The notes: generated from the sequence alone by a model not told the origin. A stretch of 56,371 nucleotides of DNA from Octopus bimaculoides (GCF_001194135.2 NC_068998.1:49945820-50002190), one strand, 5' to 3'. Positions 238 through 56,186 are shown, numbered from the stretch's first letter. Program-made: numbers and translations.

Positions 238-2877
238 GTTCTTCGTCAGAATTCTGCCACTCGGGAAGCAAAAAAATCTGCCAGGGTGCTTATAAAGCAT
301 ACCCTGAAAAAAAATCAGAAACCATATTGTGCAAGTATGTATATTTATAGTTATGTACAATATTTTCTCGTATATTTGCATGGTAAAAGTATAGGCATTG
401 AAACGACAAATGTCGTCAATCATATGTTATTTCAATCTCAATAAGAATGTTTGCAGTCAGTTACTCTGATATGGTGGAGGCGCAATGGCCCAGTGGTTAG
501 GGCAGCGGACTCGCGGTCATAGGATCACGGTTTCGATTCCCAGACCGGGCGTTGTGAGTGTTTATTGAGCGAAAACACCTAAAGCTCCACGAGGCTCCCG
601 GCAGGGGATGGTGGCGAACCCTGCTGTACTCTTTCACCACAACTTTCTCTCACTCTTACTTCCTGTTTCTGTTGTGCCTGTGATTCAAAGGGGTCAGCCT
701 TGTCACACTCTGTGTCACGCTGAATATCCCCGAGAACTACGTTAAGAGTACACGTGTCTGTGGAGTGCTCAGCCACTTGCACGTTAATTTCACGAGCAGG
801 CTGTTCCGTTGATCGGATCAATTGGAACCCTCGTCGTCGTAAGCGACGGAGTGCCAACATAACATAACTCTGATATGACTTTTGAGCTTAATGTGGCAGT
901 TCCTAAACTGAAAAATACATGTTTAACTGGTTACAAAATATTTGTACTTATAGTTATACATACAAAATAATATATATACACAAAAGATGAGATAGAATAT
1001 AAAGAAAGAAGGATTTGTAAGAAATTGAAGAGCGGGTAGGATTCTCTTAAAGACGGAATAACCACTTCAGGGCATATTATTTATTATTATTATTATTGAA
1101 AGAAACAGTAGCGCGTCATTAAAAGTGACTGTGCGTTACAAATATACGGAGCTCAGTAAACCAATTGTGACAACAATTCTGATAAGGCTACACCAGGCAC
1201 ATGCATCACAACCATGTGTGCACGACATGGTGATCTTATATAAAGATAAAGAGAACCTGACCTAGGTGTGGCACAGGAGCGAATTAGTTAAATTCTAAAA
1301 AAAATTCCTCTTAACGCATGATTTTGATATCCGTCCACTACTCCTGCTCGTGAACACTACTGCATATATGGTCAGCCGCAAAATGTCATGCTCAACAGGT
1401 TAAGGTCAAACAACAGACAAGCAAATCTTAAAACAGACAAGAATCATTATCATTGTTATTATTATTATTATTATTATTATTATTATTATTATTATTATTA
1501 TTAGTAGTAGTAGTAGTGGTAGTGGTAGTAGTAGTTGTAGTAGTAGTAGTAGTAGTAGTAGTTTTTGTTGTTGTTGTAAGTGCTTTTTCTTGATTGACAC
1601 AACATATGAAATATTTTTATATAATCACTTTTTGTTTGATACACACACACACAAACACGTGCATACATGCATACATACACAGGCACACACAGATACACAC
1701 ACACATATAATCACACACACACACACACACACACATACACACACATACGCACACACACAGACAGACAGACACACACACACACACACACACACACACATAT
1801 ATGGAACAATCAAGGTAGGAAATGCTAAAATAATTTTATAAAAACATTTTAGTACCGGTTTCGGTCAGTGAGACTTCTTCAACTGTAAGTATGGAAAACA
1901 ATTAAATTTTTGAAAAAAAGTAAATGAAAAGAATAGTTGAATACTATACTAATATACTTATGAAATACTTTTCATTTAATTCTTCCAATATTTAATTGTT
2001 TCCCATATTTACAATTGAAGAAGTTTCAATGACCAAAACCGGTACTGAAGTATTTTTTATGAAATTATTTTAGTATTTTCTACGTTGACTTTATTCCATA
2101 TATATATATATATATATATATATACGCATATACTACCAATATTTATTCACTGCTTAAAATTCAACCTACTTCCTTTCAAATTACTTCAAGCCAGTTTCAA
2201 ACTGACATATTAAACAAGTTACTTTTGATTTCCAGGCGTATGGAAATGCTGGAGCACTGTTTTCGCAAAATATCCACGAGGTGCAGCTCATACTATCATC
2301 AATTAATTGAGAAAATGTGCATTCGTAAGAAACTTTTAGTATATCATTTGAGTGGGTTGTAGCTTAGCAGTCTTGAATTGATTTGTCATTTTATTCTAAT
2401 ATGAATTTGAACATTTGTACACTTGCCAACTTCAAAGAATATTCTTTATGAAAGTCCACATTTAATACGTCGAGGTAACACCAAAATCCTGGTTATTTAA
2501 ACATGACATCTTATGGTCAATTTTATATTCAAGTGGATAATATTTGTGGGTTATTGAAATATCCATAAAATTTTAGCTTCCGTTGAAATTGATTTAACGG
2601 GGAAGGGGAATTTATTACGTTTAACATATAACTATTCGTAAATAGATAGAACAGAGATACGGTTTACAACATGCACATAAATAAAACTACCTGTACTATG
2701 TGATATTGCATTATTTAGTTTATCTGTTACCAAAATTATTAAATAACATGCCTTTTATTTATTCCAGATAAAAAATCAGCAGCAGAAAATTTGTTAGCAA
2801 AGTACATTACGATCCCAAGTTGCATGTGTCTGGTATTTTTAACCCCGCATGGTTTGATGGAATTAAGATTCATCTAA
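238..2877 (+). CDS. Locus L1: divergent member of the 6-Cys small-protein family, 5'-partial (signal exon not found; presumably upstream of the window). Exons 238-334, 2236-2324, 2768-2877
   Basis: Three AG/GT-bounded exons splice in frame (phase 1/2/1) to SSSEFCHSGSKKICQGAYKAYPEKKSETILC-K-RMEMLEHCFRKISTRCSSYYHQLIEKMCI-H-KKSAAENLLAKYITIPSCMCLVFLTPHGLMELRFI*. It shares C-x7-C, the CFR motif and KKS with the minus-strand paralogs. AATAAA follows at ~2899. Confidence 0.75.
475..862 (+). mobile_element. tRNA-derived SINE, near full length (cephalopod-type), in the L1 intron between exons 238-334 and 2236-2324
   Basis: A-box/B-box head GGCGCAATGGCCCAGTGGTTAGG...GGTTTCGATTCC, followed by a GC-richer body; the head recurs at 22075-22180. 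Confidence 0.8.
1110..1410. repeat. Interspersed repeat fragment (SINE/LINE 3'-end-like) flanked by (TTA)n/(TAG)n
   Basis: GC-richer island bounded by trinucleotide tails; family not identified. Confidence 0.35.
1799..2101. repeat. Foldback element with ~110-bp imperfect inverted arms
   Basis: 1799-1907 is the approximate reverse complement of 1993-2101 (e.g. AGTACCGGTTTCGGTCAGTGAGACTTCTTCAA vs TTGAAGAAGTTTCAATGACCAAAACCGGTACT). Confidence 0.8.
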
Positions 2878-3364
2878 TAACAATATTTAAAGACTAAAAA
2901 TAAAATAGATCATATTATTTGTGGTGTTTCACTTTGAAAATGCAGAATAACTAATTGATACTTGTAAAGTAAAAGTTACGGGAAACGGTCAACCTTCTAC
3001 TTATATAGTGACGAAAAGATAGTAACACTGAATCATTTATCAAATATCATTTAAATGCACACACACACACACACAAATATATATATATATATATATATAT
3101 ATATATATATATATGGGAATCTATTTTACCAATTATGCAGTTTCTATCGATTGATAGACAAACCATTATTTTCAAAATTGTCATCTGTAGATGATCTTGA
3201 ATTAAAAAAATTAAAAATTTGAAAGAGACAAGGTAATAAGATTCAGGTGTTTAATCCCTCCCCACCTCCACTTCTTATCACACATTTCACATACATAAGT
3301 TGTGATGAATCAATAGAAATTAAAGAATAACGCAAACAAATTGTCATTGCATGATTTGTTTTTT

Positions 3365-54300: not shown

Positions 54301-56186
54301 GGCCGATGAGTTCGTTATGATATCACAACAGTAACAACATTCTTCACAATTATGTTTTTCTATATGACCGAATTCACATTACCATGGATCTCAATGAAAG
54401 CCCCAGAACCTACTGCAGAATCCCTTCTCCATATCATTAAACCCCAACTCTTACCGTTATTGATTTCTTCACACATTTAGGGAGCAATGTTTCCATTTTC
54501 AGACGTCTCACGTATTGTCTATTACTGGAGCCAACCAAATTGAACATATATCCGTCACTGAAGAACACAAACCACCAGTTGTCGTCCGTCCAAAGTATTC
54601 GCTCATTGGCAAGAATTTCCTACAACAATCCTGAATCGATCGTTAAGCGAAAGCCTCTGAATTACACGGTCTCACCACGCGCTCGTTTTCTGTGGTGTCC
54701 CCCTACATATTCCTCATAACACAAACAAGCTTGTTTCTTCATAATGCTTGAGAGTTCTTGAAACAAAACTATGTGATCAGTTAATGTCTCTAATGAAATC
54801 AGAAAGTGCTATCCAGTTTTTCTTCAGTGTGACTTCTCGGATCCTGAGACTTTCAGCAACTTTACGTGGCTTTCTATTATTGTCAGTTCACAACTGTACC
54901 CTATTAATCTTTGCACAGATCAGGCAACTAAGTATACAAAGTTCAGAGTGTTGTCAGTTACTTTATTTTGAAATCCGCATCATACGTTCTCTAATTTTCT
55001 ACATCTTGTTATAATTTATATTTTTTCAAATAAACAGTTTCTCTATTATAAATTATTTAGTTATTAATCACTTCGTAAAAAAGATTATTGTAAATAATGA
55101 AACTAATTTAAGGTATTTACAGTAAAAATTACATTCGGAAAAACAGAAGTAGAAATCGAAATAACTTTAAACTTTATTTTCGTTCTCTAATTTGGCCAAC
55201 TACAGTATATATATACACGTACATTTTGATTCCATTTCGAANNNNNNNNNNNNNNNNNNNNNNNNNNNNNNNNNNNNNNNNNNNNNNNNNNNNNNNNNNN
55301 NNNNNNNNNNNNNNNNNNNNNNNNNNNNNNNNNNNNNNNNNNNNNNNNNNNNNNNNNNNNNNNNNNNNNNNNNNNNNNNNNNNNNNNNNNNNNNNNNNNN
55401 NNNNNNNNNNNNNNNNNNNNNNNNNNNNNNNNNNNNNNNNNNNNNNNNNNNNNNNNNNNNNNNNNNNNNNNNNNNNNNNNNNNNNNNNNNNNNNNNNNNN
55501 NNNNNNNNNNNNNNNCGGACAACTAATTCTCGCTATTACTTCACATTCTGATTTTATATCTGACGCTGATGCACCTGGGTTTTGAAAAGCCCGTTTATAA
55601 ATCAAAGCATTGAGATAGATATTTCATTTTATTTGATCTGTTTAAATTGAATCAATAGCGGAAAGGACAGCAGATGCCGTCTTACTTTACATATATATGT
55701 GTATGTGTGTATACATATATATACAAACAGTGTACTTTAGTAAATTGTTTCACTTTACTTCGCTCTACATAAATACTGAAAAACAGAAATACTTGACGAA
55801 GTATATACCAGCTCTCTATATTCGAAGTCCAAATCTCACGTGCCTGGAGAAAGCAGCGTGATACCACTCCAGTATTCATCCGAAGACTAGCCAATGTCGC
55901 CGAAATTACAGTAAGCAACTTGACGGAGTTGAGGAAAACTAAAAGACTTCTAATCTCGCAATGGGTACTTGTGTGTGTGTACTTTTTTGTTGAAATATTT
56001 GTTAATCGATACACAAAGAAATGGGTTTACAAACAAGAATAATGATAACTGGATACCTTGTTAAATTTGGACTTTCACTGTGTGGAGCACATAATCATAT
56101 TTGAAGTTATTGTCATATCAATTAGCAAGAGCATAATTGAGACACTTACCAATTAAGAGAAGCAGAATAAACGCAGTAATTTTCAT
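51310..56186 (-). CDS. Locus L7: exons 56186-56150, exon 2 55574-55516 (remainder in N gap), 52911-52827, micro-exon 52509-52486, terminal exon 51369-51310
   Basis: MKITAFILLLLI-G-ASASDIKSECEVIARISCP-[gap]-AHKVFDDCFHPDRYRECRNYFIGVRKCF-KNTSNNDE-RSVETLFLTVISFNILMQI*. All visible junctions are GT-AG. Confidence 0.78.
51880..52400 (+). mobile_element. DD37D-like fragment in intron 4 of L7, orthologous to 41831-43223
   Basis: Colinear with 42480-43070 and shares its flanks. Confidence 0.65.
54170..55205 (-). mobile_element. Tc1 (DD34E) transposon, decayed, in L7 intron 2
   Basis: ANERILWTDDNWWFVFFSDGYMFNLVGS..RQYVRR..LPKCVKKS; HGNVNSVI; IFMLNNEPCHS; WPVQDPD. TIR-like CTGTAGTTGGCCAAA at 55191-55205. 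Confidence 0.8.

Follow-up and report, generated by a model that had tools for sequence, protein, structure and literature searches.

Does a stretch of 56,371 nucleotides from Octopus bimaculoides, here called the window, hold a hidden cluster of genes for an unassigned protein family, and what would such proteins do? The original prediction, made from the sequence alone, described seven loci with a shared five-exon architecture, coding for small proteins with a signal peptide, six cysteines and a GPI-like end. The window corresponds, at 100% identity, to chromosome CM046618.1:49,945,820-50,002,190, and it belongs to a tandem array of genes that covers at least 0.84 Mb of one O. bimaculoides chromosome. 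The cluster observation is partly confirmed: the family is real, but its extent in the window was overstated. The family is not hidden and is not present as seven complete genes, yet it is undescribed.

Genes in the window

Four multi-exon loci (L3, L4, L6 and L7) could be rebuilt, all on the minus strand. Their exons have AG acceptors and GT donors, the donor of L7 exon 2 being hidden in an assembly gap, and the canonical splice sites and compatible phases described earlier were borne out, the phases being 1/2/0/0. The gaps in L4 and L6 are intronic in all cases, and L3 is gap-free. However, five of the seven "loci" are incomplete or damaged, and the only intact five-exon gene is L4:

32021..32063, minus: L4 exon 1 (43 nt, phase 1, donor gtaagt), with the start codon and the predicted signal peptide MMMKTYVFFSVFAC
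31162..31261, minus: L4 exon 2, Cys1-Cys3 (100 nt)
29589..29673, minus: L4 exon 3, Cys4-Cys6 (85 nt)
29098..29124, minus: L4 exon 4, polar stalk KSCHFNGKE (27 nt)
27513..27575, minus: L4 exon 5, MTIQRVSLPLFGVNLVMYLN and stop, hydrophobic C-terminus (63 nt)

This model is identical at every residue to RefSeq LOC128249868 (P0003, 105 aa), and its span of 4,551 nt equals that of the annotated gene. L3 is RefSeq LOC128249925 (P0001), in which both copies of exon 4 are used; because of this duplication it has six coding exons. In RefSeq isoform X1 of L3 the open reading frame runs further upstream, to 23286.

23091..23130, minus: L3 exon 1, MLKIFLFLLILVC (40 nt)
22333..22432, minus: L3 exon 2 (100 nt)
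21199..21283, minus: L3 exon 3 (85 nt)
20472..20498, minus: L3 exon 4a, TERATKVYK (27 nt)
18517..18552, minus: L3 exon 4b, EKKSRSNSKRNE, duplicated stalk exon present in the RefSeq protein (36 nt)
16232..16288, minus: L3 exon 5, MTIQRMFLLGVVVTSLCY and stop (57 nt)

Both genes are thus already annotated, labelled "uncharacterized protein", and the cluster cannot be called hidden.

Exon 1 codes for a hydrophobic leader and exons 2 and 3 for a six-cysteine domain of about 60 aa. Exon 4, which is sometimes duplicated, codes for a short stalk rich in Ser, Asn and Lys, and exon 5 for a spacer and the hydrophobic end. When the sequence is read directly, every intact copy has a hydrophobic leader 12-14 residues long, with small residues after it. 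The predicted layout of leader, six-cysteine domain, polar stalk and hydrophobic end is found in each precursor, while the reading of that end as a GPI signal was put too strongly, see below.

Damaged and partial copies

The remaining loci are frameshifted (L6), interrupted by a gap (L7) or fragments (L1, L2 and L5, with L1 on the opposite strand). The exons of L6 and L7 are as follows:

48060..48096, minus: L6 exon 1, MKISAFIFVLLN (37 nt)
46127..46226, minus: L6 exon 2, donor gtaggt (100 nt)
43627..43711, minus: L6 exon 3 (85 nt)
43304..43328, minus: L6 exon 4 (25 nt), with a run of six A where L7 has five
41109..41168, minus: L6 exon 5, RPMQTLFLTVLVVNVLMQI and stop, out of frame as assembled (60 nt)
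56150..56186, minus: L7 exon 1, MKITAFILLLLI (37 nt)
55516..55574, minus: L7 exon 2, ASASDIKSECEVIARISCP (its first 59 nt; remainder in gap 55242-55515)
52827..52911, minus: L7 exon 3 (85 nt)
52486..52509, minus: L7 exon 4, KNTSNNDE (24 nt)
51310..51369, minus: L7 exon 5, RSVETLFLTVISFNILMQI and stop (60 nt)

The intron between exons 1 and 2 of L6 contains two gaps, at 47547-47556 and 46405-46522. Exon 4 of L6 has 25 nt and therefore causes a frameshift with an early in-frame stop (after ...KKCQKKQV); the truncation is either genuine or the result of a homopolymer error. L7 loses the final ~40 nt of exon 2, together with the donor, to the gap, which leaves the third cysteine unread; it had been listed among the models ready for further prediction, and the gap makes it incomplete.

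The fragments and stray copies of exon 1 are:

37905..37941, minus: L5 exon 1, MKISAFIFVLLI (37 nt)
36584..36683, minus: L5 exon 2, Cys3 changed to Tyr (100 nt)
9077..9161, minus: L2 exon 3 (85 nt)
8743..8769, minus: L2 exon 4, copy c, RQTTTPRKV (27 nt)
7449..7475, minus: L2 exon 4, copy b, KTAPAKPKE (27 nt)
5864..5920, minus: L2 exon 5, copy b, INIQRVSLFVIIVTFLCY and stop (57 nt)
5041..5067, minus: L2 exon 4, copy a, KKSTSKRNE (27 nt)
3365..3430, minus: L2 exon 5, copy a, MNIQRVLLPVLVVTFLLLMQS and stop (66 nt)
14067..14106, minus: intact copy of exon 1, MMKIFTFIFIFAC, donor gtatgt
14960..14996, minus: copy of exon 1 with a broken donor (GT to AT)
49496..49534, minus: copy of exon 1 that has lost its ATG
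238..334, plus: L1, lone piece resembling exon 2, SSSEFCHSGSKKICQGAYKAYPEKKSETILC (97 nt)

Since exons 3-5 were not found downstream of exon 2, L5 is probably a 5' relic. The readable parts of L2 are exon 3, three copies of exon 4 and two of exon 5; its exon 2 is absent from the readable sequence of the window and may lie inside gap 10290-11011 or 11378-11862, and the intact exon 1 at 14067..14106 possibly belongs to it. L1 has the spacing C-x7-C-x16-C and matches the family HMM at E = 0.23; an exon 3 was looked for there and none was found.

The family within and outside the window

We built an HMM from a family alignment (A6) of 14 rows, that is, 12 paralogues outside the window together with L3 and L4. 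It recovers exons that were absent from its build (exon 2 of L6 and exon 3 of L2, L7 and L6) with E-values from 3e-5 to 5e-2, and the likeness between the exons is therefore not due to chance. A HMMER scan of 1.84 billion proteins gave 16 matches at E <= 1e-3. Of these, 13 are true family members, ten of which could be identified by name: nine from O. bimaculoides, on the same chromosome, and one from O. vulgaris, a single protein in which the domain occurs three times. At least ten further O. bimaculoides loci are found on this chromosome, spread over at least 0.84 Mb; members were placed at 49.37, 49.96-49.99 and 50.19 Mb, and the neighbours are 102-166 aa long and spaced by ~8-9 kb.

The full scan found no relatives outside Octopus. 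In those searches that give Pfam annotation, none of the members has a Pfam domain, and there is no named member either. The profile search of proteomes suggested earlier thus leads to Octopus only and to no described family, and with no solved relative in PDB searches the description as "unassigned" holds.

The original C-x7-C-x13-C-x8-C-x8-C-x9-C pattern is read in spliced L3, L4 and L6. For the family as a whole the spacing is C-x7-C-x13(-14)-C-x8-C-x7(-8)-C-x9(-11)-C, with a conserved phenylalanine between Cys3 and Cys4 and another after Cys5; L3, L4 and L6 agree with it, and exon 3 of L7 and L2 agrees with its second half. In the 14 aligned sequences C25, C33, C47, F53, C56, C65 and C75 are invariant, while identity to the reference is otherwise 19-38%. 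The second phenylalanine is invariant or nearly so across the family.

The exon plan is kept as well. Two distant paralogues outside the window, P0014 and P0013, have five exons with identical phases (46/91/88/33/60 nt in one and 37/94/82/36/60 nt in the other). In general, the exons measure ~37-46/91-100/82-88/24-36/57-66 nt with phases 1/2/0/0, and the precursors ~100-115 aa. L4, L6 and, where readable, L7 follow this plan, and so does L3 with one extra stalk exon.

Predicted fold and known domains

AlphaFold2 predicts four short helices, with a pLDDT of 80-89 over residues 21-70; the confidence of the model as a whole is medium (mean pLDDT 67). Neither Foldseek nor HMM searches retrieved a relative from the PDB, fold searches with small helical models being weak; a profile match to the mosquito chain 9fp8 (E = 0.76) is at chance level. 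The AlphaFold and Foldseek check proposed earlier thus gives an all-helical model without a PDB relative, in agreement with the earlier exclusion of Ly6, saposin and odorant-binding patterns.

The six cysteines, the lack of a CC pair, the all-helical model and the absence of Ly6 chains among the PDB matches do not fit a Ly6/uPAR three-finger domain. Saposin-like (SAPLIP) domains have six cysteines in the arrangement C-x2-C ... C-x9-11-C ... C-x5-C and form a four- or five-helix bundle. The spacing here differs, and no such domain was retrieved by profile search or by Foldseek, which is weak for small helical models. Insect odorant-binding proteins (PBP/GOBP) have six cysteines with a C-x3-C core, ~120 aa and six helices; with no C-x3-C, a domain of ~60 aa and four helices, the octopus family does not fit this class either.

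Divergence of the mature domain

Between L3 and L4, exons 2 and 3 are 52% identical while the flanks are 72% identical (Fisher p = 1e-6), although the flanks were aligned with gaps, which inflates their identities. The mature-domain exons outpace the adjoining introns in divergence, while the cysteine scaffold, leader and tail are still recognisable. In exon 3, dN exceeds dS for L6 against L7 (0.41 and 0.25) and for L2 against L3 (0.77 and 0.33), whereas whole-domain pairs among L3, L4 and L6 show dN/dS below 1; all these values are based on 28-61 codons and are close to saturation. A lineage-expanded family with a fast-diverging mature domain, as proposed originally, agrees with relatives found in Octopus only and with domain exons that outpace their flanks. 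The number of genes has increased by tandem duplication, both of whole units and of sub-modules (exon 1, and exon 4 with intron 4).

The C-terminal tail and possible function

The hydrophobic core of the tail is 9-19 residues long, mostly 13-16, and in 15 of 16 tails it lies at the C-terminus or at most four residues from it. In the exception, P0005, a second, largely hydrophobic stretch of 15 residues follows the core. A triplet of small residues is found 4-11 residues ahead of the core in 13 of 16 tails, according to a home-made heuristic, which is our rule of thumb and not NetGPI, PredGPI or another validated predictor. It fails for L4 (no clean omega triplet), for P0020 and in effect for P0005. 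GPI-attachment signals as a class have small residues at omega, omega+1 and omega+2, a polar spacer of ~5-10 residues and a hydrophobic stretch up to the C-terminus, and by this heuristic the octopus tails resemble such a signal.

We give a probability of roughly 55% to an octopus-restricted, diversifying family of secreted or GPI-anchored recognition proteins in a tandem cluster. The leader would be cleaved in the ER, three disulfides would lock the domain, and the C-terminal signal would be exchanged for a GPI anchor, leaving a hypervariable helical module displayed on the outside of the cell; truncation or the use of an alternative 3' exon could give soluble forms. Under diversifying selection, the domain would serve in binding or recognition. 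The chemosensory, immune, gamete or toxin roles named originally are guesses.

It is conceivable, if doubtful, that the products are instead soluble peptides (pheromone-, toxin- or antimicrobial-like), which act away from the producing cell once a C-terminal propeptide or sorting segment has been cut off. Isoform X2 of LOC128249931 (P0007) stops ahead of the hydrophobic tail that isoform X1 (P0020) has, the assembled L6, stopping in exon 4, would yield a tail-less product of 79 aa, and a dibasic KR directly precedes the tail in exon 4 of L3 (copy b), L2 (copy a) and P0014; the conserved signal and introns, set against a hypervariable, cysteine-framed mature part, also form a conotoxin-like pattern. 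However, most members have no KR site, and a cationic charge is not a consistent property of the domain. The tail exon is also retained almost throughout the family, even in very distant paralogues, where its acceptor is good and its reading frame open. A precursor with a signal peptide and one C-terminal hydrophobic segment could also be a type I single-pass membrane micro-protein, its end serving as a permanent transmembrane anchor without cytoplasmic tail. We find this unlikely: cores of 9-19 residues that include Asn, Thr, Ser or Gln would make a short, weak membrane-spanning helix, and most members have no positively charged stop-transfer flank.

That the array consists of decaying duplicates, and the RefSeq models of prediction artefacts with no functional protein, would account for the broken copies in the window (relic L5, frameshifted L6 and the exon-1 copies without ATG or donor). 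Further, the family proteins in the collection each lie on a single genomic contig, with no independently assembled transcript ORF among them. Yet at a paralogue identity of ~20-38% six cysteines and two phenylalanines show little or no variation, distant copies keep their splice sites and phases, and the family occurs in a second species. Without selection one would not expect conservation of this kind, and we hold decay to be very improbable.

Comparison with known systems

The molluscan conotoxin superfamilies share with the octopus family a conserved signal exon and introns, a hypervariable mature part with an invariant cysteine framework, and a large lineage-specific expansion. Conotoxins differ in being soluble peptides of venom, which have a propeptide but no hydrophobic C-terminal tail, and in their frameworks and exon plans. 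Small helical six-cysteine signalling proteins (Aplysia attractin, the Euplotes pheromones and the CHH/ITP neurohormones), and likewise saposin-like proteins, are similar in size (~40-80 aa) and in their helices; they have three disulfides, and some are fast-evolving recognition signals, as is proposed for the octopus family. However, their cysteine spacings are different, they have no GPI-like tail, and the PDB profile and fold searches brought up no solved structure of any of them. The fungal CFEM and plant LTPG proteins combine a small helical disulfide-rich domain with a short stalk and a GPI signal, the layout proposed for the octopus family, but they have eight cysteines with another spacing, belong to other kingdoms and gave no sequence or fold match in the PDB searches.

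The GPI-anchored Ly6/uPAR proteins (CD59, Lynx1, Bouncer/SPACA4) differ in their all-beta three-finger fold with 8-10 cysteines and a CCxxxxCN motif, whereas the octopus family has six cysteines, another spacing and a helical prediction. Like the octopus family, they have a small mature part of ~70-100 aa, tandem clusters and fast evolution, and their signal peptide, single disulfide-locked domain and GPI-type C-terminal signal have putative counterparts in the octopus proteins. By analogy, they would offer the best functional parallel for a surface-tethered binding module.

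Gene models in the window

The window is AT-rich (34% G+C), with many microsatellites and 14 runs of N. It contains no long ORF, and neither Rfam nor ARAGORN detected an RNA gene in it. Positions 17513-42063 are 100% identical to a 24,551-nt GenBank stretch (assembly GCA_001194135.2, CM046618.1), from which the window corresponds to CM046618.1:49,945,820-50,002,190 of Octopus bimaculoides.

A six-frame pattern scan together with a splice-aware scan found two types of minus-strand exons flanked by AG...GT: 100-nt exons with C-x7-C-x13-C and 85-nt exons with C-x8-C-x9-C. The exon boundaries and phases were fixed by reading the sequence around these exons, which are exons 2 and 3 of the models and encode the cysteine domain. 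Exon 1, the leader, is a hydrophobic mini-exon with an ATG start, phase 1 and a gtaagt end. The distance from it to exon 2 downstream is 0.6-0.8 kb for L3, L4 and L7, 1.2 kb for L5 and 1.8 kb for L6. Exon 4, the stalk, was located by aligning duplicated 3' blocks, while exon 5, the hydrophobic tail, was located by homology between L6 and L7 and then traced in the remaining copies.

Two candidates were rejected on the way. The exon-1 candidate was a conserved ATG peptide, M[QN]LL[AS]FLLG, present in L3 (near 22514) and L4 (near 31362) at 80-90 nt before exon 2; no GT donor there gives phase 1, as the model requires, and it would leave an intron of about 50 nt. The exon-5 candidate was an ORF (FYCGLK...) that follows exon 4 at a distance of about 150 nt; it was dropped because the copies do not conserve its frames.

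In the rebuilt models the exon sizes, GT-AG sites, compatible phases, polar stalk and hydrophobic end of the original prediction are all present, and its cysteine spacing is exact in the spliced products of L3, L4 and L6; the anatomy was largely right. The seven complete five-exon loci that it also claimed (L1-L7) were not recovered, as L4 is the sole intact five-exon gene in the window. L3 has six coding exons, as the module of exon 4 plus intron 4 is present in two tandem copies. Its RefSeq mRNA includes both stalk exons (TERATKVYK + EKKSRSNSKRNE), and therefore the stalk is longer in L3. No relic exon 5 was found between L3 exons 4a and 4b. In L6, exon 4 is 25 nt long, with a run of A6 where L7 has A5, so that the frame is shifted and the protein ends KKQV*. 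L7, claimed as a full model, has an exon 2 that breaks off after 59 nt at the edge of the gap 55242-55515, leaving the third cysteine and the donor unread.

The other three loci are fragments. L2 has exon 3, three copies of exon 4 and two of exon 5; its exon 2 was not seen and may lie inside the gap 10290-11011 or 11378-11862. L5 consists of exons 1-2 only, with the third cysteine changed to tyrosine, and nothing credible or related to exons 3-5 was found downstream. One 85-nt AG...GT candidate there, 33185-33101, was rejected, as it begins within an ATAG microsatellite and has the wrong cysteine pattern. L1 is a single 97-nt plus-strand piece that resembles exon 2, has three inserted residues and gives an E-value of only 0.23 against the family HMM; no credible exon 3 was found for it. 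Apart from the gaps that cut L7 and possibly hide L2 exon 2, all gaps are intronic or intergenic, and L3 is gap-free.

RefSeq entries and relatives

L4 is identical in every residue to the RefSeq "uncharacterized protein LOC128249868", whose annotated span of 4,551 nt also equals the model, and L3 matches "uncharacterized protein LOC128249925", isoforms X1 and X2. Contrary to the original claim, therefore, the cluster is not hidden, although it has no name. No protein of L6 or L7 is in the searched collection, which fits the frameshift of L6 and the gap in L7. The analysis thus identifies copies that are absent from the annotation owing to gaps in the assembly or to a frameshift of one base.

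It also exposes a probable error in RefSeq: isoform X1 of LOC128249925 begins 52 codons upstream of the MLKIF... methionine (23286-23131, minus strand), and since this buries the signal peptide the start codon is probably mis-chosen. Isoform X2, which omits exon 2, starts at the upstream ATG within the conserved block.

A HMMER profile built from two full-length proteins and single-exon translations was scanned against all 1.84 billion representative proteins and gave 16 hits at E <= 1e-3, made up of 13 genuine relatives and three repetitive sequences that are false positives. The O. bimaculoides relatives (LOC128249822, 832, 838, 931, 940, 941, 942, 944, 945 and 946) are all on the 55.6-Mb chromosome of the window. 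O. vulgaris contributes one protein with three domain copies, and one further relative is an entry from a 2015 annotation. Word-indexed protein searches returned O. bimaculoides matches only. Neither the scan nor the look-ups gave a relative outside Octopus or a Pfam domain on any hit, in line with the prediction of an unassigned family. As far as the databases show, the family appears restricted to Octopus. A full-text literature search, LOC numbers included, found no paper on it, and in the searched literature it is undescribed.

Plus-strand members are located at 49.37 Mb and 50.19 Mb, minus-strand members at 49.96-49.99 Mb, so the cluster spans at least 0.84 Mb. Small neighbouring genes occur once per 8-9 kb. 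This spacing over 0.84 Mb, together with about 125 consecutive LOC numbers, suggests that the cluster contains many tens of genes. The five-exon plan and the phases of the window genes recur in two distant paralogues. The family is now defined by its cysteine framework, exon plan and chromosomal location. As a sequence family it is new, and it belongs to a familiar type, that of tandemly expanded small cysteine-rich surface or secreted proteins.

The cysteine domain

An alignment of 14 sequences shows no variation at the six cysteines and F53 and almost none at F69; the remainder is variable, with 19-38% identity to the reference. The domain consensus is C-x2-LAK-x2-C-x3-Y-x2-Y-x6-C-x2-Y-x2-FL-x-CF-x4-D-x2-CY-x2-F-x3-H-x-C. 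From this alignment AlphaFold2 predicts four helices (approximately 20-32, 34-42, 47-58 and 63-72) with a domain pLDDT of 80-89; the stalk and tail have low confidence.

The fold could not be placed in a known family, because matches to PDB are at chance level only, both by Foldseek with two AlphaFold2 models (best E 6.9 and 5.1) and by a profile search of PDB sequences (best E 0.29); such searches have difficulty with small helical bundles, and the empty result is absence of evidence.

Duplication and divergence

Identity is 62-82% in paralogous introns and 52-71% in mature-domain exons; the leader and tail exons, at 70-85%, are better conserved. The contrast is clearest between L3 and L4, with 52% identity in the mature-domain exons against 72% in introns and flanks (Fisher p = 1e-6), and is weaker in other pairs. 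In exon 3, dN exceeds dS for L6 versus L7 and for L2 versus L3, but not in whole-domain comparisons, which are more saturated. The pattern resembles the conotoxin-like or immune-type accelerated evolution of a cysteine-framed domain. Because the samples are small, we grade diversifying selection on the mature domain as likely, short of shown.

The duplication units are whole genes as well as sub-modules, namely exon-1 blocks and blocks of exon 4 plus intron 4.

Duplicated sub-modules in the window
~20579-19400 and 18631-17206, L3, exon 4 + intron 4 module, two tandem copies
~8751-8188, 7566-5674 and 5159-3165, L2, exon 4 + intron 4 module, three tandem copies
14106-14067, minus, extra exon-1 copy, intact
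14996-14960, minus, extra exon-1 copy, donor GT changed to AT
49534-49496, minus, extra exon-1 copy, ATG lost

The inactivated exon-1 copies adjoin intact ones, indicating turnover of 5' modules. The last L2 module has a terminal exon of its own, possibly an alternative or orphan 3' end.

Several other features were observed in these regions. About 1.4 kb of intron 4 is 66-73% conserved among the L2, L3 and L4 paralogues (e.g. 27803-29205, 17206-18631 and 3710-5111), at least as well as their coding exons. No ORF was found in it, and it could be an old transposon or regulatory sequence. Intron 4 of L7 and of L6 contains homologous degenerate ORFs (51966-52289 and 42513-42896, both plus strand) whose sequence, judged by eye, recalls the C-terminal portion of a transposase of the Tc1/mariner type. 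A 100-nt plus-strand repeat, 90% identical between 476-575 and 22079-22178, looks by eye like the head of a tRNA-derived SINE, and was not called by ARAGORN or Rfam.

A conserved upstream element

Seven of the eight exon-1 copies carry, about 85-95 nt before their start ATG, an E-box-like palindrome, ACATATGT(TACATTATATTT), with a TATA-like A/T run after it.

Starts of the E-box-like motif
56275, minus
48185, minus
38029, minus
32146, minus
23210, minus
15086, minus
14194, minus
L003:630 and L003:9903, additional occurrences

Its variants retain CANNTG (CATATG, CAGATG, CATCTG), and the element also precedes a paralogue whose protein identity is about 22%. Either a core promoter (E-box and TATA) or conservation of an upstream ATG or uORF would explain it. 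As an E-box, CANNTG would go with neural or sensory expression, a point that belongs to the speculative surface-code reading given below.

The C-terminus and possible function

The tails have a hydrophobic core of 9-19 residues, located at the C-terminus or at most four residues from the end in 15 of 16. Thirteen of the 16 tails also have a small-residue triplet (SNS, NTS, SSS, GSS etc.) 4-11 residues ahead of the core. Judged from sequence by a heuristic written for this analysis, a rule that L4 itself fails, this would be the layout of a GPI-attachment signal. We read the proteins as secreted, disulfide-locked helical modules, mostly GPI-tethered to the outer membrane and rapidly diversifying, with a role in binding or recognition, at a probability of roughly 0.55.

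The main rival is a purely soluble peptide from which the tail is removed, which we consider possible but clearly less probable. Isoform X2 of LOC128249931 has no tail and the two isoforms of LOC128249941 differ in theirs, so soluble and alternative forms are likely to exist. A true transmembrane anchor is unlikely, as the hydrophobic core is short for a transmembrane helix. Least probable is non-functional decay, for which the frameshifted and fragmentary copies would speak.

The last exon varies between RefSeq isoforms of neighbouring family genes outside the window (P0005/P0022, and P0007/P0020, i.e. X2 and X1 of LOC128249931), and the tail of one LOC128249941 isoform is nearly identical to that of LOC128249942. 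This suggests that 3' exons may be used alternatively or shared by adjacent genes.

Cephalopod genomes are known for several very large lineage-specific expansions, e.g. protocadherins, zinc fingers and chemotactile receptors. To these the cluster would add a small, fast-diverging and probably surface-tethered family, with no relatives detected outside Octopus and a fold neither solved nor annotated. If expressed on sensory, skin, immune or germ cells, its members would be candidates for octopus recognition problems without assigned molecules. A bolder version of the GPI-tethered reading, which we regard as speculative and improbable, is an octopus-specific hypervariable surface code based on a four-helix, three-disulfide fold not seen before. 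Such a code might serve cell or self recognition, such as the unexplained self-avoidance between skin and suckers, or the tethered modulation of chemotactile receptors. The octopus chemotactile receptors derive from nicotinic receptors, and just as Ly6 prototoxins modulate nicotinic receptors, the proteins of this family might modulate these derived receptors.
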